A stretch of 64,000 bases of DNA from Fimbriosthenelais zetlandica (taxonomy: Eukaryota): contig OZ365111.1 in assembly GCA_977030845.1 (NCBI GenBank), forward strand, positions 10,850,001 through 10,914,000, given 5' to 3'. Below are positions 1,181 through 25,043 of the stretch, piece after piece; positions within the stretch are counted from its first letter, which is position 1, and the number at the start of each line of letters is the position of its first letter. The notes under the pieces were generated by a model, which ran no database searches, was not told the origin of the DNA, and was given only the letters and a program-made list of their open reading frames with translations. Both the position numbers and the translations under genes were made by a program.

Positions 1181-4100
1181 TTACCAGAACGCATGACGTT
1201 GAGGCCATTTAGCAACTGGCACAGCCCTGGTCCTGAGGAAAAAGTCCAATCAATGAATGAGAACATATAGTTAAATTTTGTAATTAGATAATTAAGTATA
1301 TTTTAACCATTCAATTAAGCATGGCATCCACCTATCCGATTATCGGATCCGATTTTTGTAGGTCTTTTTGTCCACAAAAAATCGGATCCGATCAATTTTG
1401 ACCCGATAATCGGATAGGTGGATGCCAGGCTTTAGAATTCTCATTGGGACTTCCAGCATGACGACACTTTATTGCTATAGAAATAGAAGTTAATGGTGTA
1501 AGGTTTAGCTTGGTACTTACGGTACTCCATAGACATCACCATGATGATGCGGGGGATGAGTGGGTACATTCCATTGACAGCAACAGATGACACAAACAAT
1601 ACAAAGGCAAATGATAAAGGCCACGCAGGCAAAGACCAGAGCAGTGATAGCAATAATCCTAATTCTCCTTTCCACGTCGTCATCACCCTTGTCACAGAAT
1701 GCACCGTAGTAGCCATCATTACACCTGGAAATATTTTTACAAAGATACAATTTTGTTATCGATTTTATGTTTAGAAATTAACTTTACAAATTAATTTCGG
1801 AAGTTTTTGTTATGGATGGGGGAAGGGTTTTCTGTTGAGTCACCTAACGACTCAGCCCATCCAGGGGTACCTTATTTCCCTGTGTATAAACGGCACCTGG
1901 CTATAAACAACACCCCCTGGCCGCTCAGGTTAAAATCCATGTATAAACCGCTGATTTGTTTAGAAATCTACAAAAATCGCTGTTGTATTAACCACAGGCC
2001 GCGATTTATTGTGAAAAAAGTCGCGGCAATTACCGCCAGATTTTTTTAAAGTCAGCGAGAACCACCAAGTCTGAAGATGTAGGGCTCCGCCTGTAAAAAC
2101 CCTGGGGTCAACCAAATCAATTATTTAATTCCTTGATCTCGAGTACATCCGGGACATCTCAAAACCAGTTATCTATTAAGTGGATTGGACCCTCACTTGG
2201 CCAAGGCCGAACCTTTCTATGGGCCTGGTAGACTCGAGGCGCCTATATACTTACTCGCAACGTGGATATCCATGGTCATCATTGACGCATGTACCATAGG
2301 TACAAAGATTTAGTCCATTGTACATGTCACAGGGAGCGTCCTTCCCTATAATAGGCGAAGAGTTCTGGTTAATGACCTATTGGTAAATATGTAAATATTC
2401 GGCATATCCAATGATACATAGAAGGTAGAAAATGCAAATTATACTGAGTTAAATTAATCTTCACTATTTTAAAGCCAGAAACAGTTATCTGACAATTTCT
2501 ACACCTTACACAACATTTTGATCAATGCCATATTCTTAGATCAGACATTGATAGTAAAATAACTATTTTGGTATGTATGTATTTTTGTATCATGCCTAAG
2601 TGAGCGGCATGATTACCAGTTCTGGCAGAAGGAATATATATGGTCAAATGGTATTGTCTCCCTTCCAGAATCGAAGTTCATTTGTTTAGCCAAAAAATCA
2701 ATACACCCACAATTGTATGGTCCATATGCAACTGGGTAACCTTCGCATGAATCGCCAGTCTGACTGAGTCGGTATCCAGGGGAACATGAACAACGGTAGC
2801 TGCCTGGTGTATTGATACAGTAGTGCTTGTAATCGCCACATGGGTCATTATCACACTCATTTTCATCTGCAAATAATAAGTAAAACCTGATTAGTACCTG
2901 TTTTGCGATTTGTGTTGGGGCCGGCCGTTGCGACTGACATTTCCATAGCAGTTGCAGGTTTCCTCTACTTATGGTGCTTGAGATTCTTGCTTTCACTATC
3001 AAACTCAAACCAGCCATTTTCTTGCAGCAATATCAACAGAATTATCGGCTGTGTACTACAAGTTTTGTGGTTGTTACATTATACACCCTGTTGTACAAGG
3101 AACCTCGGCAATGGCGAAGGTCGACAAGCTTTTGCTTTGTACTGTTTTATTGATAAAAAGTCCTTGGACAATTGCTTGTCAAATATTAAGTCACTTTTTA
3201 AATATTTACCTTCACATTCGTAAAGAGTTGTCCATTCACCATTGGCCTGACATTCAACATCAAATTCCTTCCTCCCCTCTGGGGCTGTGCTCCTGTAACC
3301 AGGCTTACACTCGTAGGTCACTTTCTTTGTAAAGAGGAAGGATGAACCAGTGCGTTCAGCATTGCAGATCACTCCAGGATCACCACAGCTTATCTCTGGT
3401 GAAAGAAGTTTTCTTGTTTAAATCGAATGAACAGTGACCTTTGTTTAAAGCTTCAATGAGGAAAATTCCTCAGACATCGACTCCTTAACTCCAAACGAAA
3501 TCTCTTCCCCAAATGTCAAGCATAGAGTTTCAGTGTCGCACCATAATATTTGTAGAATGTAGCAAAGGGAGCATTCACCAAATAAGATATTCAAGGATGA
3601 ATGACATGAGGTTGAGTAATACTTACTACGGCAGTGAGGTATAGGCAGAGGTTCCCATCGACCTGACTTAGCGCAGTAAATCTCAAAATTTCGTCTTTCT
3701 GTTGGGTGAGTGCCTAAATTGACAGGTGTGCCGAAAAAGGCATTGTCAATAGCATAACCTTCGGTACATTCACAATCCACGACGTCCCCGAAGCTGCCCG
3801 ACTGTGGTACACACACAGCATTGAGTATGTTTGGAATGTCCCCGCATGGTATTCCTGCAATATCACAGGCCTTAATTATTGAAGTTCTTTACAATATATC
3901 TAACTGATAATTTCCACAAGAGCTTACGATTTAAAAAGAAACTTGTTGCACTCAATCTCAGAATCTCCTGATTTTAATTAATCAGTTAATCGTGCCACTA
4001 TAATGCCTATATGCAACGTAAACTCGCGCAAGTCTTTGATTGATTTTTCAGTGTTAAACTAACCAATAATAAGACCCTTGCTTACTTGAGCAAGTTACAC

Positions 4101-10509: not shown

Positions 10510-12579
10510 TCAAAAATCATTGGGGTCGAAATCCATTCCATTTCTTATGGCTCTGGCATTATTCCTCTGCTGTTCCAGTGGTATTGGAGGCAGACTTTTT
10601 CTGGCAGACTCTATTTTAGCCAGTCGACGATTCACCTGTACCTTGTATTCCTCCCTCTTCTCTGTGGCCATTAATGCTATCTGGTTGACAGCAGCACTGC
10701 ATTCTCTATCAAGATCCATGGCAAGCAATTCAATAGATTCTCCTTCTCTTGGGTAAATCAGCTTTGGAAGTTTCGACAACGGTGCCAGAAGGAATTTACC
10801 GGATACATCTACATACATAGAAGACAATGACTCGATTGCGATCGTAGACTGAGTAGCGTTTTTTGCATAGTCATACATCAAAGCGCGATTGAACTCACTT
10901 TCATAATCCAGCATGTTTTGAGCCTTTTGGTTGAAGCCCAGGATGTCGCCATAAAACGTGGTCTCGACTCTGTTTGCCACCTGGGAGAAAAACTTGACCA
11001 GTTCTGACCAAATTGTGCACACTTCACTTAAGGCATGGAAACCTTTCATCAGAGTTTTCTGAATGTTTTCCATGTCTGTGTTCGTCAAATCTAGCGATTT
11101 GAGTTCAGCCATGGTTTTCTGGAGTTGCGCCCTACTCTCCTGTGCACGTTTTTCGGAAGTAATATTCTGCTCCTCATACAACTTCAGCGACTCCTGAGCC
11201 TTTTGAACTTTGAAATGAGCATTGTCTCGCATAACTGCCAAGGCTGAAGGCTCGTGCTCTGATGTTTCCTTCGGTTTAGGGGCAGGGATTCTGCTCGGTG
11301 TTGGATTGACCTTGGCTAATCTGGTGATTGTAGCGTCCAAACTCTGGACTTCGGAGAGAAGGCGTTCAAATTCTGCTTTAATCAATGTTAGGGCTTCAGA
11401 ATCACCGTGCAGGTTATGTGCTTTAATGATGGAATCAATTTGTTTGCACAATCCAGCAGCAGATCTTGTTATCTCCTGCATTTGGGTGTTGATGTCATCA
11501 GCTGAATTTGATCTTGCTAGTTTCGCATTCAATGTAGTAAATGAGGTTTCAACCTTGATCACCCCACCGACCGGGTCACGGAAGCAGACTTCATTATTCT
11601 TAACATCGAAGCTCCTGAGTAGACCAATAATCAATGTACGGCAGTGTTGAACTGAAAAAGTTGTTGTAGTATCCAGGTTAATTTGTGGTACATCTTGGCA
11701 CATGGGTTCTTCTTGTGGTGCGTTGCCTCTTGCCCTGGAGATGCAATCCATTGCCTGTGATCCCATCCGCCCAACTGCTGGGATGACTTTCCTGAAGGAC
11801 AGGACCATGTTGATGGTCTGCATGGCTTCTTGGGCGAGCCCTGCCCCGATAATCGCCCAATTGGATGGCATACTGTCCATGGCATCTTTATACAGCTTTC
11901 TTGCTTCATTGACAGTTTTTTCCATCTCTTCTTTTGCCTTGCGACTCTCCTCCTGCTCCTCCTTCTCTGAAATCTCTTGTGCCTTCAGAATCTCCAATTT
12001 CTGAAGGTTTTCCTTCAGGACCTGTTCGTGGTGACCTTTGGTCGATGCTGCAGCCTCTAGGAGTTCCTTGATCTCGTCCATGACTTTATGGTACTTGAAT
12101 TCGGTGCCGCGGGCCAAATCAGCACATCTCTTTGCACGTTTCCCCAACTTTTCCAGAGTGTCCCTTGTTGTCATCTCAAGATCTCTGTCTGTGCCCATGG
12201 CAGCAGCCCGAACAACTTCATTCAGAAGATCTGGGATATTTTTGGTCATCAGGTGTATTTGATCCATGTTAATGTGAGCGGTATGAAATGCATCATGGCC
12301 ATCGTTTGAGATTTGTACCAGACTTGCCCTCAAAGAATGTGGATATTTGATGTGTTTAAACCCATCTTTTGGAGGCTTGGCAGCTAGAGATACGTCATTT
12401 TCATGGGTGACTAGCATGAGTCGACCAAGCACAGAAATGGCCATGCATGACGGTGACATCCCTTCTAACAGTTCATAATGATCAGTCATCAGAACACATT
12501 CTTCTTCACGGTCCTCTCGTCGAGAAATGCTTCGTTCTGCATTCTCTATTCTCACCAGATCATTTGCTGCCTCCGCCAT
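10510..12579 (-). CDS. Uncharacterised alpha-helical coiled-coil protein (about 689 aa), candidate alpha-pore-forming toxin-like component (gene A)
   Basis: Uninterrupted 699-codon ORF, GC-richer than its flanks. The first ORF ATG (12609) lies upstream of an acceptor (TTCTCTTGGTTTACAG|G, AG at 12589-12588), so the likely start is MAEAAN at 12579. A long charged heptad region (EQVLKENLQKLE...EEMEKTVNEARKLY) is followed by the moderately apolar segment WAIIGAGLAQEAMQTINMVLSF (11859-11794) and a second coiled coil. No signal peptide. The motif KPPKDGFKHIKYPHSLRASLVQISNDGHDAFHTAHINMDQI recalls, from memory only, the uncharacterised zgc:162509/PTHR33488 family; this needs verification. Confidence 0.9.
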   Translation of the reverse strand: MAEAANDLVRIENAERSISRREDREEECVLMTDHYELLEGMSPSCMAISVLGRLMLVTHENDVSLAAKPPKDGFKHIKYPHSLRASLVQISNDGHDAFHTAHINMDQIHLMTKNIPDLLNEVVRAAAMGTDRDLEMTTRDTLEKLGKRAKRCADLARGTEFKYHKVMDEIKELLEAAASTKGHHEQVLKENLQKLEILKAQEISEKEEQEESRKAKEEMEKTVNEARKLYKDAMDSMPSNWAIIGAGLAQEAMQTINMVLSFRKVIPAVGRMGSQAMDCISRARGNAPQEEPMCQDVPQINLDTTTTFSVQHCRTLIIGLLRSFDVKNNEVCFRDPVGGVIKVETSFTTLNAKLARSNSADDINTQMQEITRSAAGLCKQIDSIIKAHNLHGDSEALTLIKAEFERLLSEVQSLDATITRLAKVNPTPSRIPAPKPKETSEHEPSALAVMRDNAHFKVQKAQESLKLYEEQNITSEKRAQESRAQLQKTMAELKSLDLTNTDMENIQKTLMKGFHALSEVCTIWSELVKFFSQVANRVETTFYGDILGFNQKAQNMLDYESEFNRALMYDYAKNATQSTIAIESLSSMYVDVSGKFLLAPLSKLPKLIYPREGESIELLAMDLDRECSAAVNQIALMATEKREEYKVQVNRRLAKIESARKSLPPIPLEQQRNNARAIRNGMDFDPNDF

Positions 12580-13822
12580 TATTTTCCCTGTAAACCAAGA
12601 GAATTTCATTTGATAATATATATTAATAATTTAGTCAAAATCAGTTGTTGTAATTGCTCACATTTTTTCTCAAGATCCCCCTACATGCCCTTTTATTTGG
12701 ATGTATAATGCTATTAATTCCACTCAATCAGCATATATATGTATGCTCTCTACTGTAACAAGGCCAAAGAAAATAAATGTTTTGTTTAGCGTCACCAACA
12801 CCTGGTAAAAGTTGTGGGTGACATGGCTATTTTAAGACCCCCCCCCCCCCCCCCCGCACATGTCACTATGACATAACCCCCCGACTTAGATATGAAAGAA
12901 TAATATTAAAAGCAAGGCTGGGACATAAAGTAAAATTTATTAAAATTATGATTTGGTAGGGTAAAATTATGTGGAATAAAATTTTACAGAAATTGCCCCG
13001 ATTGTATAAAGGTGAAGTATACAATAAAAGAAGAATGTGACAATGTAAAATTAATGAGGTAAAACATGATAATTACATGATGGATGGTGAGAATAAGTGG
13101 AGAATGACGAGTTAATGTAATTGAGAAAAAAACAAAAACAAAGAAGGGTGAGGGTGGGTGGGAGAAGAAGGGTACCGGGTGGCGAGCAGAGGTGAAGTGA
13201 AGAGGGAGTAGAGAGTGGAGAGGTTATGTGGAGAGGTTATAAGGAGAGGCCAGTGTGGACACCTGGCCATAGATGTGAGAATTAGGCCAGGAAGAAGGAA
13301 GTTGAGTAAGGAGACGCCGGGGGGTGCCACAATGATCCCGCCTTAGCCGAAGCCAATGCGTACACAATTTCAATGTTTTGCCACACAATTATAGTTGAAG
13401 ATGTAAAAAATCGAAGACCCATATGGAAATACAAGTCGTTTCCATCGAGGAATAATCGCTAAAAACATCTATTTTCTTTGGCCTGATATTTCCTAATACT
13501 CTGTCAATATTATTCCTTGTCACATTATGTCCAATATCTTCACGGTACATGTACCGGTACTTTCATTTACACAACTCAAGAGGATGCACTTCAGGCATAC
13601 AATATTACATTAACATGATACATAGCCTACATGTAACTTACATTCTTGTTGACTTTAAATTTCTAAAATGGTTCTTCAATGATATACCAAAAACCTCACT
13701 TATGAATTTACCAAAAATTAATCTATACATGGATTCATGAATAACAGACTTAAGTGCAGTCTATTGAGATTGTACAACCCTAAATATAACTGCTAAACTT
13801 ATAACAAGTTCCTGCGACTTAC

Positions 13823-14050
13823 CTTGTGATTGGAAGTGTTCAGGAGTGTTGTTAATTAATAGTAAGAGACGACTAATCTAGTCTTTAGTCCAATGTTCCA
13901 ATGTCTCAGTTAGCAGTATAGCTTGTATGTGCGCTGTAGACAGCGAAGTACTGTATCGCCACTGAATGTCTACTTTCAGTCTGGCCCTAAAGCTCTGACT
14001 CGCTGAACAAAACTGAACTGCTCAGAACCAGGGTGGCCGCCATCTCTTTC
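13823..14050 (-). other. Putative non-coding first exon and TSS region of gene A
   Basis: Consensus donor CAAG|GTAAGT (GT at 13822-13821) can pair with the acceptor at 12589-12588. YY1-like GAGATGGCGGC at about 14036-14046 on the minus strand; YY1 motifs typically lie just downstream of a TSS. Confidence 0.55.
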
Positions 14051-14373: not shown

Positions 14374-14960
14374 ATTTGTTCTCTTTCCGGAACCTGAGTC
14401 TGCAAAGATCGGATTGTTGGGAGGGGAGGGGAAAGCCCCAGACCTATACTTCGTGACTATCCACCACACACTGACCACAAAATGGACATAAAACTGTTTT
14501 ACTTTCATTGACATTGATATTAAATAACCTGGCGTCCATTGTCAATATTTATTCCCCATCATTCCAGTGCAACAATTATGTGATGAAAGAGAATTGAAAA
14601 AAAGGAGTAGTTTATAGGAGAGTTCTTTATACAAAGTCGGGAAAGGGTCATAAATGTCTGGCACTGACACAGGCATGTGTGTTTTGTGTATCTTGTGGCC
14701 ATGTGGGATATATCTTGAGATAAGCAAGCACAGACAAATCCTACAAGTTTAATATAGAAACCAGTGGGATGTTTCTTAAAATTCATTTTAAATCTATAAT
14801 TGATGAAAATGCAAACCTGCCCCAAATCATCTAGCATTATTTTAAAGTTGTCATTGCAAGTTAGTCATATATCTATTAAATAGGAAGCGGGGAAAGGATA
14901 TAAATAGATACTGTTGGCATGGAACAAAAGTTCCAAAGTGATGCATCATTTCAGTGATAC

Positions 14961-15023
14961 TCACTTTCATTTTCCCGGTCATGACTCATCAGTTCTCGCT
15001 TACTCAGGAGGAAAAGTGAAACC
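14961..15023. promoter_or_regulatory. IRF - AP-1 - IRF motif cluster between the divergent genes A and B
   Basis: TCACTTTCATTTTCC (14961-14975; reverse GGAAAATGAAAGTGA, IRF-E/ISRE), TGACTCA (14982-14988, AP-1), GGAAAAGTGAAACC (15010-15023, canonical IRF1/2 site). Confidence 0.65.
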
Positions 15024-15572
15024 ATAGAGACTAGATGTCTACTCTCTCTGGGTAAAACCAGACACTACTGGTGTAGTCTCTCTGGTAAAACCAACCTATT
15101 TTTATCCGTTTGGCAGGTCCTGGGTAGATGTAGGCCTAGATGATATATTGATGTGTATATATACTGGGATGCGGCCAATGTGTGCAGGGGCCATTGTATC
15201 ACAAAATATGCAATATCAACTGATATATTTGCACTGAATCTTTTTTCTGAAACATGCCCTAGACTAAGCGATTGGTGGATGTTAGGTGTCGTAAAGTATT
15301 GCTGCCCTCTCAGGCTATGGAAATTCCATTGTATCTAACCTCATGGGGCAGTAGGTGGGTTTATCCTTTTTAAACGCTGTTCAAAACCCATTGTGAGATG
15401 TCATGGCAATATTGAATAAATGCCAATTTCACGAGCAAATTCTAATTTTACTATAACAAATACCATATGGCCTCCTTCTCGAAAGACTCACAGATTATGT
15501 CGAATTTCTCAGCATTGTCAATGTACCTGAGTTTTTGATGACGATGACAGATGGCCTTCCATAGAGCGAAAG

Positions 15573-15651
15573 CTTTCATTTCCCGATCTCGCCCACTGAG
15601 GCTTGTGTATTCCACAGACCTGTGTGTGGTGGTCCGCCTGGGAAGTTTTCC
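15573..15651. promoter_or_regulatory. Additional IRF/EICE-like and kappaB-like motifs proximal to gene B
   Basis: CTTTCATTTCCC (15573-15584; reverse GGGAAATGAAAG, GGAANNGAAA type) and GGGAAGTTTTCC (15640-15651, imperfect kappaB). Confidence 0.35.
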
Positions 15652-15820
15652 TTCACCCGGATACTCACAAAGAATATATTATTTAATCTTGTTCGGACCT
15701 GGAATAGAATTTTATTCTGCTTCTAAACTGAGCAGTGTGAAGACGAGCGAGACTTCAGTGGTACAGACGTCAATTTTTGTAGTTCACTATTCGTTGATAA
15801 AAGGCTGGGTCAAGTAGAAA

Positions 15821-17203
15821 ATGGCATTTTTCTTGCCCGGTGGGAATAATGCCTTTGGAGATGTTTTCGGTGGACTGGGAGGTACTATAGCTACATTACA
15901 ACAAATGAAGGATGGGGAAGAAGATCAGCCTGAACATAGAATCAAAGCTAGGCCAGACAGGTCTAAAAACATGCCACTGGATACAAATGACCAAGAGGAT
16001 GCAATAAGGTAAGACTATAATATATATTGGAAATTTATCCAAATTACTGGCTTTCAAGGATTTTAATGGTTTTTCATTTTAAAAGAAATGAATTAATTAT
16101 ATAGTATCCAAGTATATAAATCTCATCATAAATCATGACTTATTTTATTTTCAGTCTTACAAAGACTTGCATGACAAAAACCTCAAGTGCATTGGTTGCC
16201 ACCATAGGCGACTGTGAAAGGATTGCCCAGTCAGTTAAAGAAGTGGTCGAAATCAGCAAAAATGCCAGTGACGGTGCCTCTCTTGTTCAACAGGTATTTA
16301 ACATATACAAATGATGTTAATTTTAATAACTTTTAATTTATCAAGTATCTGCCACATTTCTAGGCGTTCCTATGCCAGTTTTTTTGTTTGTCATTGTACC
16401 CATAGGCTACATCTTGTCTTACGATGCTATTCAAATTGCTCACTTTACAGATGCACAGCAAATTAGAGATGGCAGAAAGAACTGTTTCACAACTGAATCA
16501 GTGCATCTCAGACGAAATGGTGCACCTCACAGCTGAAGTATCATCTGCAGAACAAGAAGTGACGGCGAGCAACCGAAAGGTAGACAAGAAAGAGGAAGAG
16601 GTGAAGATCCATTACGAAACTTATGTTAATGCTGAAGTTATGTGTGTGAAAGCATTGAAGGAGGAAAAATCTTGGCAGGGGGATTTTGTACAAATGAGTA
16701 TGGGCGAAATAATCTCTGCAATTCAAACCTCTGCTTTGGTCTTGGGAATAGCTGCTTTAGGTGGACCCATAGGATTGGCGATAGGTTATGCCTTTCTGTG
16801 GTTAACTGCAGACCGTGCAAGAAAAGCCCGTATGGACAGGGCTTATGCCGCAGCTCAGAGGCTGAAAAATGCTGAGGCCAACTTTGAAAATTGTCAAGAG
16901 TATCTGGAAGAATGCAAGGCCATTTATGAAGAGGCAGAAAACGAGCTGGATGTGGAGTTGTCGGCTCAAGTGATTAACACCATGCAGTTGAAGCGGATTC
17001 AGGCTTTGCAGAAATTCATCTTCTCTGTTGGGGAAAACATGAAGGATGCCAACTTGTTGGTTGGGAAGCTCTCGGCCCGGGCTGGGACGGCAGCCTTTAT
17101 GACTGAATGTGGCACGGTGAAAGAACTTATCATGGTTCTACAAGAGATGCAGACCAACTTTGATCAGTTCGGGAAGCTTGCTCCAGCTTTAGCTTATAAT
17201 TGA
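15821..17203 (+). CDS. 359-aa coiled-coil protein with a central Gly/Ala-rich hydrophobic hairpin, candidate alpha-pore-forming toxin-like component (gene B)
   Basis: Exons 15821-16008 (AG|GTAAGA), 16155-16293 (TTTTCAG|T ... CAG|GTATTT, open frame, not in the ORF track) and 16451-17203 (TTTACAG|ATG), 1080 nt in one frame. Hydrophobic stretch IISAIQTSALVLGIAALGGPIGLAIGYAFLWLTA (about aa 196-229) is followed by basic RARKAR and flanked by long heptad helices. No signal peptide. Confidence 0.88.
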
Positions 17204-17903: not shown

Positions 17904-20385
17904 TAAATTTAAAAAAAAACCAAAAAAACTGTCATATGCAGACCCTGTCGATCCAGCAATGTAAAGTCCCCCTCCCCTATAACCGAGTCTCATGTTTGAG
18001 TATGACAAATGATTGTTGGCCTGTGTTCAGGAAGATGATTTGGAAGAGGTTATATGTTCCCAGAAGACGTTTGTGCCCTGGGGATTTAGTGCGGCTAAAA
18101 TCCTTGGCCTGAGGATACCAGGGTAATTGGGGTGAGGCCTTGGACGTCCCGGGTTTGGATGATAGAGCCTAATAGCCGTCTTAAGACGAAATAGGTCCTT
18201 TGCCCGACAGGCTTAGGAAGTACTTGGGTTCGGATTTGGTGCAATTGAGAAATGCGATGAGAGGGGAAAACATAGTGGGAAAGCAATGAAAAGGAAGAAA
18301 ATATCCTGACTGAAGTGTGGTCATAACATAACCCTACATGACTACTCCTGGCTATGTATACGTTATCTATCTTTGATTATGTGAGATTTGAAGAATGAAT
18401 TAAAACCAATCACAGATCTAGACCAATATATTCCCTAAACCATATTAAATTCATATTGCATGTCCATACTATATGGGGAAATATATTTGATATCCATTGC
18501 AAGTTCATCCCATAAAAATTGCATATTAAATCCCCTCTCTTCACTGCGTCCACGGCGCCATCTTTCAATCAGTATATGTGGCCGTGACCTTGGCTTGGGC
18601 AGGCTTATTTCTGAATGAGTTACTCATCAGTAGGCACCTGCTAATGAGATTGGGTATAGAGAGCCGTTATAGATCCGGCGGGATTGAGGAAGTACCCGAG
18701 TGCACAATACGGTCAATTACAGTCCTCCCCGCCATCAATTGGCATACACACGCCGATGCCAACAACCCAGCTTAAGGTTATTGAATGGCGACGGCTTGGA
18801 GATTTAGCCTTGCATGAGCTATCATTGTTTATACCCCGGGGGCGGGAATACCCATACATACTCTTAACTGAAATACATAAAGCTGTATGGTTAGGCCTTA
18901 TAACGCATTATTGTAATATGCAAAATTCTACTTCTGCAAGAAGAAAGGCTGTGGGTAAAAGTTCAGTTTTCAGAAATACCAAACTGATTTAATCTGATTT
19001 CCTATTGTCAAAGCTTGATTTTCAATGTTAGCTATTCATTACCATAATCAAGCAGAACTCCACAGACAAAACACTCATTTGAATGTGATTTCTTTTGTCT
19101 TTCCATGGATTTAAAAAAACAATGATTGATTACCTGAACGTTGATTGGTCCCCAAGAGTCCATTTCCTGCTTTTGTATGCACCATATGGGAAGGGCATCT
19201 CAGAATCATGAATGCCATTGTATTGTTTATATTGAATTATTGAATTACGTTATAATGTATTTATCTTTTTAGCAAGCTCATTTACTGCCTTTTGTTTGAG
19301 GGATTTTTTTTTCACTTCAAAATGTTACCTGGGTGCACTAGTTGTTAACTGCCCAAAGGTATAATTTTACCGTCCCCTTCTCTCTGACGACTGTCAGGAC
19401 ATAGGTGCATGTGTGGTACAGATCGTACAGTATTGTGCCCCTATTTAGGAACGCCATTAGATTTCGACACTGCTGCATATTAACTGGAGACTTTTGTGGG
19501 TAACATTCATATAGTATATAGCAGGGGCTTGGCTGCTGGGGAAAAATCTGTTTTGTACGTCGATTAGTTGCTGATCGACTGAATTACAGAATGGCTGAGA
19601 TTCTGGTCCTAGGCTATTTGTCTTGATCAATTTTCTTTCTGGTTATATCATTTCTATACCTGTACGTGTTTATGTTACATATTTCCATGGTCACGTCTGA
19701 CCTCGCTGACCATTGCTGACCACAGTGCCTTGACCATGACATAATGACCTTGCATGTATTTGGCTGGCAGAGGTAGCCATGGCCCCATAGATAATCGATG
19801 CTTTCTTCAGTCCAGGCAGTAAAAGGGCACTGTCCCCATCCTCATCTCAAGGGCCTAAGATGAATGCCTCTGCCATTTTAATTTCCTTCTCCCAATGGTC
19901 TTAGATTTACTGAAATCCTCAATTTCCTTAATGCATTCTTTTATTAATTGAGACAAAGAGAGATATGGCTGGGTCCGTTGTGCTTCAGATAAGATAATAA
20001 AATCGAAGCCTTGAAGATGGCCAAGTTGATCTCGTCCTATCCTATTCTTCAGTGACAAATTGCAATTGATTTTATCTTAACTGAGACGAGCCTTTCTCCA
20101 CATGAGGGAATAGATATTTTCCTGGGGAGTAGAGGGTACACGGCTATGATGGGCGCTCCTTGGAAAATATCATCATAATATATTCATTGATATTAGAGTA
20201 AATAATGATGAATTCAGAAAGGATGGGTGGTGGATGTTAATTGTTGGAAATCATTACTGGATGTTTATCTGTATGTTTTGTCTGTTATATATATACAAAG
20301 GGGTGACTGACCAAGGGCTTTCCTTTATTGTAATTTGAATGATGTAGATTACTCATTGAAGAAGGACAGTCTCACAACCGAAATA

Positions 20386-20407
20386 TCTCTTTCTCCCTCA
20401 CCCTCTC

Positions 20408-20460
<53 letters not shown>

Positions 20461-20634
20461 CCCTCTCTTTCGTCTATCTCCTCTCTTTCTCTCCCTACCT
20501 ATCTCTATCCCTCTCCCCTCTCTTTCTCTCCCATCTCTTTCCTCTCTCTCTCTCTCCTCCCTCTCTCTACTCTCGTTCTCTCCCTATCTCTCTCCTCTCT
20601 ACCTCCCCCCCCACCCTCTCTCTCTCTCTCTCTC
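20386..20634. repeat. (CT)n / pyrimidine microsatellite
   Basis: Pure CT run of about 45 nt embedded in about 250 nt of imperfect CT repeat. It accounts for spurious ORFs 20335-20673 and 20505-20687. Confidence 0.95.
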
Positions 20635-21879
20635 ATAATCATATACTCGGGCCCTAACATTGCCAGCCAATAGTCACGTTTGTTCAAATCCCAAAGGACT
20701 GTAATGCGTGATGTTCATTCTTGAGGCTATAAAGTTGGATTGGAGTGAACGTGTGTGCATTACATGTCCCCGATGGCTTTAAATATAATCAAATGTAAAC
20801 AGTTCGTGACAAAGTGGAGGCCCGGGAAGGCATTATACCCCTGTGGTGGATGTGCTGCATTGATTATTCATTTTCAAAGCATCAAGTAATGGTCTCTGCC
20901 TTGTCAGAAATCCTTTAGAAGTTCAGAAGAAATTCATACTTCTAAATTACAATGGGGCAGGTCCTATACGTGGGATACCTTACGACTTTAAAAAAAAGTC
21001 AAGTTGAATGTTATGGCTCTTCTTACGCCTCACAGAACTTTCACAGCTGGAAATCTATCAAATCTACCACTTTGTTGTCACGTGATACTGATAACACTGT
21101 CGGAGGATGTGATAAGTGGAATGAACTCGTACTAGTGAATATATTGCTATGTCTAGCATGCAGACTATTGCACTCCGTTCACTTTGTGTTGCCTCCTATC
21201 TGTCAATGGACCAGTCAGTAGATGGCGTGTCTGCCATGTAGTGAGCATCAAGGAGGCATCTTGTGTACCGAGGATAGGAACGTGCTTCAGCAAAGCCAGG
21301 CCAAACTTTGCCCTTCCTCTTATGGACGGCTCGCAAATCAAGGCAAACAAGCCTATTACGGGGGTAGAACGGAGCCTGTAAGTATCTCTATGGCAGTGAG
21401 AGGTCTGAAGCTTGCAGAGCATGTATATCAGGAACACTATCAGGAATTACCCTGACACTAAAGTAAATACTTTTAGTAGTACCATGCCATGGTCCTTGAT
21501 GGCTTTTACAAACTTGATCTCGTAGAACTTGATTTCTTGCATGTAGCTTAGAATCTAATATAAGTTTGGAGCAAATATTAAAGACGAAACTGTTTTTATT
21601 TGAAATGTCTTGTTATTTGAGGTCAGGTACATCGAACATGGTGTCATTTCATTAATAAAACAGTATACTACTCACAGTGTGCTAAGGATCACCCCCAAAA
21701 TTTCATTAGCTTGATTTTCATACTGTTTGTCAAAAGGTATCGGTAAAATCAAACGACTTAACTTGAACAAATCCAAAACAGTTTTAGATTTGAGTGCAGT
21801 TTCAGTTTTGAGTGTTCAAGAACTTGCTATCCCTCTTTGAATGCAGTATCTATTATCAGGATTGAATACAGACCTGTCT

Positions 21880-23804: not shown

Positions 23805-25043
23805 TCAACACATACTGAGGTTATGCAGTTCACAAATGGAACTGTCCCGGACAATGGAACTCTTGCCTACCCCACCGTTACATTGGGTATTGGTATGCGA
23901 TTGTCCTTCTTGGCAGAGACGGCAGCCTACCCGTTGGTAGACAGTGGCAGCTGGTAAAGTGGGGTTCCGACTACTTGACCGACTGAGAGTTGTAGTCCTA
24001 CTAGTACTGGGCATTAAGGGCGTGTCTCTTTCAACATCCTCATCCCTAAGATGATTCCCTTGACAACACGATGAACAGCATGGTATCCTTCGGAATATAT
24101 TGATATTTCGGTCAAACAATATCAAGACTAAGGGGTTGATTGCAGAGTTGGACCAAGCAATGAAGGTCAGGAGTTTGTATATCTTTGTGGGTTGGGCAAA
24201 TTTGGGGTCCACTAAGGTTAAAATGAAGAGTGGGTACCAGCAAAGTATAAAGAGGCCTGTTATTGTCATTAGGACTCGGGCTCGACTTAAAGAATCCTGG
24301 ACAAGTTTGCGGATATTTTGGTTTTGTGTGTTGCCTCTAGAGATAGCAATTGAGGCTCGAACAAGAGAGGCCAAGCGGTGGGTGGAATTGGCCTGGACAT
24401 GACGGTAGAAGAATACAAGGTAGTATATGGCCCCTATCATGGCCAGAGTCATAATAGCAATCCACATAGCATGTACTACATAACTTTTGATTGTGCCATA
24501 GACAAATATACAGTTTCCAATGAGGTCATTGTAATTGAAGTCACCACCAATGATGGTCGGACCTAAATGGATGATGATACTTCCAATGTATACCATGACA
24601 ATGCCAAAAATTACACAGCACAGGCTTCCTTTAGCCTCCCCTCCAACATTATGTTCACTAAACGTATAAGCTTCACAACAAATCATTGCTACAATATTGA
24701 AACCCGAAGCAGTAACCACAACAACGTAGGATCCACCAAGAATGGTGCAAAAACTGGGAGCCACGTCGCGAAGTAAACTCTGGGCGAAGGGCACGCAGTA
24801 GCCACACTTGATAATATCTAAGACACAGCCATGGACAATGAAAGCACTGGTCATCTTACGTAATGGCTTACATGTAATGATACAAGCAATCACTGCCAGA
24901 TTGAGGAACAGCCCAGAGGCAGCCGTTATGAAGAGATAGAGTGCCTCGTTAACATTCTCTGATGGAACGCGTTCGTCGATATCGCCAATTTGGTCAAGGT
25001 CATGGATGACCGGCACAGGGCTCACATCATCATCGTATTCCAT
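23805..25043 (-). CDS. Intronless orphan class A (rhodopsin-like) GPCR, 412 aa, loosely SREB/GPR88-like
   Basis: Seven hydrophobic helices. TM1 GLFLN, TM2 AFIVHGCVLD, TM3 Cys (FCTIL) with ECL2 Cys (GNCIF), TM6 CWYP, TM7 NSAINPLVL. Cys cluster and Ser/Thr-rich C-terminal tail. The subfamily assignment is tentative. Confidence 0.93.
   Translation of the reverse strand: MEYDDDVSPVPVIHDLDQIGDIDERVPSENVNEALYLFITAASGLFLNLAVIACIITCKPLRKMTSAFIVHGCVLDIIKCGYCVPFAQSLLRDVAPSFCTILGGSYVVVVTASGFNIVAMICCEAYTFSEHNVGGEAKGSLCCVIFGIVMVYIGSIIIHLGPTIIGGDFNYNDLIGNCIFVYGTIKSYVVHAMWIAIMTLAMIGAIYYLVFFYRHVQANSTHRLASLVRASIAISRGNTQNQNIRKLVQDSLSRARVLMTITGLFILCWYPLFILTLVDPKFAQPTKIYKLLTFIAWSNSAINPLVLILFDRNINIFRRIPCCSSCCQGNHLRDEDVERDTPLMPSTSRTTTLSRSSSRNPTLPAATVYQRVGCRLCQEGQSHTNTQCNGGVGKSSIVRDSSICELHNLSMC

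Follow-up and report, generated by a model that had tools for sequence, protein, structure and literature searches.

A compact cluster of IRF- and AP-1-type motifs between two divergent annelid genes, a candidate stimulus-responsive regulatory module

The stretch of DNA analysed here, referred to as the window throughout (64 kb), carries two genes in head-to-head orientation, gene A on the minus strand and gene B on the plus strand, with an interval of 3.2 kb between their start codons. Judged from the sequence, both genes are real and divergently arranged, and the interval between them holds a compact cluster of three short motifs, followed by a tandem duplication (Table 1). The window can be assigned to an annelid by the best named relatives of its intronless GPCR gene, and a further exon with calcium-binding domains was recognized near the window start. 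In addition, a long CT/GA microsatellite-like tract is present at 20335-20690, one strand of which reads as an SLSLSL 'ORF'.

Table 1. Positions of genes, motifs and repeats in the window.
Feature	Sequence or content	Position	Strand	Basis and remarks
Exon with calcium-binding EGF-type domains		2613-3017	minus	near window start
Gene A, single coding exon	689 aa, starting MAEAAN	10510-12579	minus	ORF
Putative 5′UTR intron of A	donor CAAG/GTAAGT	12588-13822	minus	splice consensus; exon 1 ends 13823
NF-kB/Rel-like site	GGGGCTTTCC	14430-14439	minus	pattern scan; plus strand GGGGAAAGCCCC at 14429-14440
TATA-like sequence	TATAAATA	14899-14906	plus	TATAWAWR scan; 57 bp from site 1, A side
IRF/ISRE-type site 1	GGAAAATGAAAGTG; 12-mer GAAAATGAAAGT	14963-14974 (12-mer)	minus	consensus match GAAANNGAAAST
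Site 1, extended form	CGGGAAAATGAAAGTG	about 14962-14977	minus	
AP-1/TRE site, optimal	ATGACTCAT	14981-14989	no strand	TGACTCA core 14982-14988
IRF-E-type site 2	GAAAAGTGAAACC	15011-15023	plus	pattern GAAAASYGAAASY
Tandem duplication, 34 bp	units 15026-15056 and 15060-15090	15026-15093	plus	repeat search, 74% identity
TATA-like sequence	TATATATA	15156-15163		TATAWAWR scan; B side of repeats
Third IRF-like site	CGGGAAATGAAAG	15573-15585	minus	site-1 core minus one A
Gene B	359 aa	15821-16008, 16155-16293, 16451-17203	plus	ORFs, spliced translation checked; all introns GT-AG
Intronless rhodopsin-family GPCR		23805-25043	minus	best named relatives: Paralvinella 75%, Capitella 65%, Dimorphilus, Helobdella

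The homologues of gene A align from the second methionine of its open reading frame, and the first ATG (12609) is probably not used. A splice acceptor, TTTACAG/G, lies 8 nt upstream of the second ATG, and the A-like gene of a related annelid has an acceptor 9 nt ahead of its ATG. Together with the upstream donor, the splice consensus points to an intron in the 5′UTR of A, the first exon of which would lie within 13823 to about 14040. A 23-nt inverted repeat with 96% complementarity (12761-12783 and 13462-13484) encloses about 680 bp of this putative intron, and the enclosed sequence holds a C run of about 17 nt near 12840-12857. The stretch 12761-13484 may be a MITE-like insertion, for which a target-site duplication was not identified.

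By profile search, gene A falls into a large animal protein family that counts 1375 representatives at E ≤0.001, annelid members among them; the proteins are about 700 aa long. Its named members, from salmonids, smelt, knifefish, sharks, chimaera, lizards and the pearl oyster, are all annotated as 'uncharacterized', and a literature search with the vertebrate gene names found nothing relevant. The Pfam scan of gene A gave no match, the PDB sequence search returned no relative below E = 0.001, and neither A, with either of its possible starts, nor the adjacent GPCR had an exact entry in the sequence collection. The collections searched likewise held no same-species transcript for A or B. The AlphaFold2 model of A, built on a 71-sequence alignment, was confident and all-helical (pLDDT 80, pTM 0.81). 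Its best fold match was to one chain of the umbrella toxin particle Umb1 from Streptomyces (E = 8e-7), with a very poor global superposition (TM 0.12) that is too weak to assign a function; HblL1 and Ptx2 were also among the fold matches, with non-significant E-values. Some longer family members carry extra N-terminal parts. In the Lates calcarifer protein XP_018518566.2 (P0104), the A-family region is joined to Stonustoxin-helical, thioredoxin-like SNTX and fibronectin-III domains, and P0214 shows a weak GTPase (MMR_HSR1) match; these parts could be either real fusions or merged gene models.

For gene B, no homologue was found in the word-indexed search, nor in the related annelid sample, and the comparison of B with A revealed no relation. 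The model of its large exon, of low confidence (pLDDT 67), contains a helical hairpin of about 100 residues that turns in the hydrophobic, glycine-rich ALVLGIAALGGPIGLAIGYAFLWL, and the modelled shape is reminiscent of membrane-inserting hairpins. The fold search with B returned generic coiled coils only, none of them significant. Moreover, no immune domain or signature was detected in A or B in these searches.

The cluster itself consists of an IRF/ISRE-type site (site 1), an AP-1 site and an IRF-E-type site (site 2), which together span 61 bp (14963-15023) as read from the sequence. An earlier note on this DNA had described two IRF/ISRE matches in opposite orientations around a perfect TGACTCA within 63 bp; the arrangement was confirmed with the slightly shorter span, and every sequence described there was found again, at most a base or two off its stated position. 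In pattern scans, site 1 was the sole match to GAAANNGAAAST and site 2 the sole match to GAAAASYGAAASY in the 64-kb window, and the AP-1 site was the only TGASTCA within the A-B intergenic region. The AP-1 site, ATGACTCAT, is a 9-bp palindrome-like sequence that encloses TGACTCA. Site 2 departs from the strict GAAANNGAAA quoted in the earlier note at its first position, an A (RAAANNGAAASY), and fits the IRF-E consensus G(A)AAASYGAAASY. In sequence, sites 1 and 2 both match ISRE/IRF-E elements, and the binding of IRFs to them is predicted.

We then compared the motifs with their background. Over the whole window, single motifs are at or near background, with no clear enrichment: 9 copies of GAAANNGAAA were counted where 4.5 are expected, a number reached in 5 of 100 shuffles, and TGACTCA occurs 10 times against 10.9 expected. 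In contrast, the strict cluster, defined as two RAAANNGAAA(SY) / RAAANNGAAASY sites at most 80 bp apart with an AP-1 site between them, was obtained in none of 400 composition-matched order-3 Markov sequences of 64 kb each. With the loose core AANNGAAA, an equivalent cluster appeared in only 4% of the simulations. Likewise, 134 kb of other animal DNA contained 3 strict sites, 0 of them paired. The G+C content around the cluster is 40%, equal to the window value, and AT-richness does not trivially account for the cluster. The cluster is real and statistically unusual, its motifs are of high quality, and it is improbable by composition. The pattern was picked post hoc, so the nominal probability overstates the significance, which is perhaps 0.01-0.1 per window when the many possible motif combinations are allowed for.

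Further motifs were found in the A-B intergenic region. The third IRF-like site is located about 240 bp upstream of the ATG of B, at the beginning of an ATG-free stretch, and it also fits the ETS-IRF (EICE) pattern GGAANNGAAA. The sequence CGGGAAA(A)TGAAAG, which covers this site and site 1, occurs twice in the 64 kb, both times on the minus strand of the A-B intergenic region and about 600 bp apart. Further, a good NF-kB/Rel-like site lies about 530 bp from the cluster; its pattern occurs 4 times in the window against 5.9 expected and is not significant alone.

The closest annelid sequences came from the sample ERR14368249, in which the GPCR, a receptor strongly conserved among annelids, is 97-98% identical at the amino-acid level yet has a dS of about 1.2, and the non-coding DNA of this sample gave no alignment with the window. 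Its A-like gene is 60% identical to A, with a dN of 0.31 against 0.014 for the GPCR and a saturated dS; such a dN is compatible with fast protein evolution or with paralogy and is not diagnostic. The contigs with the A-like gene are 3.5 kb long and break off in the 5′ intron, the 431 bp upstream being intron, and the GPCR contig stops short of the A/B region. In the 10 kb upstream of the A homologues of smelt, salmon, knifefish and pearl oyster, neither a paired strict IRF site nor an IRF/AP-1 cluster was found; the salmon homologue has a transcript contig that is colinear from 149 nt before the ATG. This result speaks against a conserved control of the A family by IRFs, while it bears little on the annelid locus.

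These data bear on the explanation that three short motifs co-occur by chance in AT-rich non-coding DNA and were noticed for their textbook likeness. The background frequencies of the single motifs, the post hoc choice among many possible combinations and the lack of homologue or conservation support in the ERR14368249 non-coding DNA and in the fish and oyster upstream regions are all in its favour, as is the expectation of roughly one cluster of this kind in every 1-2 Gb of random DNA, calculated with the simulated densities for strict IRF sites (2.67 per 64 kb) and AP-1 sites (7.5 per 64 kb). However, the same calculation gives only about 4e-5 strict clusters per 64 kb, the cluster falls precisely into the interval between the divergent genes, which makes up 5% of the window, and the near-identical 13-mer copy of site 1 by the start of B is not easily random. 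We consider chance a rather doubtful explanation, albeit one that deserves serious weight.

To place the cluster relative to transcription, the start sites of both genes were estimated from the splice consensus and from stretches that lack ATGs. The plus strand is free of ATG at 15554-15820, a 270-nt gap that ends at the start codon of B (15821); ATG-to-ATG gaps of at least 260 nt represent 0.26% of the gaps in the window and about 2% of its bases. The minus strand is free of ATG at 13739-14040 (305 nt), which spans the putative first exon of A. By comparison, 23 ATGs are present on the plus strand at 14919-15551. These patterns suggest that transcription of B starts within 15554-15820 and that of A at or below about 14040, which would put sites 1 and 2 at least 0.5 kb upstream of the B start and at least 0.9 kb upstream of the A start. 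Between the two putative start sites there would be at least about 1.5 kb, compared with less than about 1 kb in the definition of a bidirectional promoter. Based on these distances, an upstream element is a more probable role for the cluster than a shared core promoter, and only the third IRF-like site would be proximal to B. The earlier note had placed the cluster in the shared promoter of the divergent pair; its location between divergent genes holds, while 'shared promoter' is too strong a term for sites at such distances from the putative starts. Given the TATA-like sequences on either side of the cluster, a nearer start site with a spliced leader may be used instead.

The sequence on the B side of site 2 is a 34-bp tandem duplication. 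A short direct repeat, TCTCTCTG(G)GTAAAACCA, had been reported to occur twice in 15043-15093; this was borne out, and its exact cores (15043-15060 and 15077-15093) turned out to be the 3′ part of the 34-bp duplication. Both units end in CTCTCTGG(G)TAAAACCA, and the ending TGGTAAAACCA is itself a short inverted repeat. Two stretches in the putative exon 1 of A, 13865-13887 and 13961-13977, resemble the 5′ part of the unit; they are AGAGAC...GTCT-type imperfect palindromes with 74-82% identity over 17-23 nt, and the resemblance may be due to chance. When the intergenic region was compared with the whole window, no other copy of the cluster region was found; the Rfam scan of the 64 kb gave no match, and the cluster arrangement was not found in a motif-architecture scan of metagenome contigs.

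These repeats raise the question of whether the cluster, together with the TATA-like box at 14899 and the 34-bp repeat, is a remnant of a mobile element or of a local duplication, such as a solo LTR or a MITE fragment. The proximity of this box (57 bp), the tandem duplication that adjoins the cluster, the weak similarity of the repeat unit to the two exon 1 stretches and the MITE-like insertion nearby in the intron of A are what such an origin would have to build on. However, a second copy is absent from the 64-kb window, neither terminal repeats nor target-site duplications were found, and the metagenome scan gave no match, and we regard a mobile or duplicated origin as very improbable.

We further compared the putative upstream module with known IRF and AP-1 elements. 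Like the vertebrate ISRE/IRF-E of interferon-stimulated genes, the annelid cluster has closely paired sites with a 12-13 nt consensus match upstream of genes. Unlike these elements, it resides in an annelid without known interferon or ISGF3, and induction is here a prediction; moreover, vertebrate ISREs are mostly found no more than about 200 bp from where transcription starts, whereas the annelid sites are probably 0.5-0.9 kb or more away. The combination of bZIP and IRF sites, with a kB-like site in the same intergenic region, also recalls the IFN-beta enhanceosome (ATF-2/c-Jun, IRF, NF-kB). However, the enhanceosome is a contiguous element of about 55 bp with overlapping sites in a fixed order, while in the annelid cluster two inverted IRF sites flank the bZIP site, with gaps of 7 and 22 bp. 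An enhanceosome of the IFN-beta type was ruled out by this difference in order and spacing and by the distance of the kB-like site. Similarly, the AP-1 heptamer adjoins GAAA-type IRF half-sites as in the AICE element bound by BATF-JUN with IRF4/8. In AICEs, TGAnTCA is separated from GAAA by 0 or 4 bp; here TTTC on the A side is 7 bp away and GAAAAGTGAAACC of site 2 on the B side 22 bp, and an AICE was ruled out.

IRFs that recognise vertebrate-type sites have been described in other protostomes, with which the annelid cluster shares its setting. Vago is activated by shrimp IRF (PMC4602278), and human ISRE and IFN-beta reporters are switched on by IRF2 and IRF8 of the oyster (PMC5557890). Unlike the annelid cluster, which is defined by motifs and flanked by uncharacterised targets, the shrimp and oyster cases are based on experimental binding or reporter data. 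A cGAS/STING-TBK1-IRF axis has been described in the oyster (PMC8218723), and a motif search in the promoters of poly(I:C)-induced genes of the cnidarian Nematostella recovered IRF, STAT, NF-kB and ETS motifs (PMC8476169). According to a passage of PMC7157521 that cites Nehyba 2009, IRFs were lost repeatedly in ecdysozoans and several were kept in other protostomes including molluscs. Given the oyster reporter and cnidarian promoter work, it is reasonable to interpret GAAA repeats of an annelid as IRF sites. IRF-dependent transcription in annelids has hardly been reported on, and a functional study was not found in our literature search for annelid IRFs.

The GAAA repeats can also be read in another way. 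Zinc-finger repressors of the PRDM1/Blimp-1 type bind (A)AGTGAAAGT-like sequences, which overlap with IRF sites, and the cluster might be a non-immune regulatory element read by such repressors, or by AP-1 acting in development or in the control of stress or wound responses. The motif (A/G)TGAAA(G/C), found in both GAAA-repeat sites, agrees with the PRDM1 consensus; besides, AP-1 sites take part in many programmes outside immunity, A and B carry no immune signature, and the upstream regions of the fish A-family genes contain no ISRE. However, the full 12-13-nt ISRE/IRF-E matches, including the flanking S and Y, are at least equally good for IRFs. A non-immune element of this kind appears unlikely to us, and so does the corresponding expression of A and B, which would be tissue- or stage-specific rather than pathogen-induced.

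Our preferred reading, to which we assign a probability of about 40%, is that 14963-15023 is a stimulus-responsive IRF/AP-1 cis-regulatory module, acting as an upstream enhancer or promoter-distal element. In the mechanism that we propose, pathogen sensing would trigger signalling that activates IRF-family factors, which would bind the two inverted GAAA-repeat sites. The same signalling would activate a Jun/Fos-type bZIP dimer that binds ATGACTCAT between them, and the IRF and bZIP factors would jointly raise the transcription of the neighbouring genes. Gene B seems the likelier primary target, since it is nearer and a third copy of the site-1 core lies by its putative start, while A may be under joint control from a distance of about 0.9 kb or more. 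The most far-reaching form of this reading, in which one intergenic module co-induces two helical, possibly membrane-active annelid proteins via IRF/AP-1, strikes us as improbable.

The earlier note had regarded the cluster as the main independent support for an immune role. This goes too far. The evidence is at the level of motifs, and no immune domain could be recognised in either A or B; the cluster cannot count as independent support and serves as a hypothesis generator. In this capacity, it makes immune induction a testable hypothesis, and as a motif-level hypothesis the finding adds little before a measurement of expression or binding. A validated module would serve as a reporter of an interferon-like response in annelids, and it would give the large, uncharacterised A family its first biological context. 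If the far-reaching reading with co-induction is true, the locus would provide the first defined IRF-responsive element and effector pair in Annelida and the first functional handle on the A family, with A as a member of an ancient family common to vertebrates and molluscs and B as a lineage-specific hairpin protein with a hydrophobic tip.
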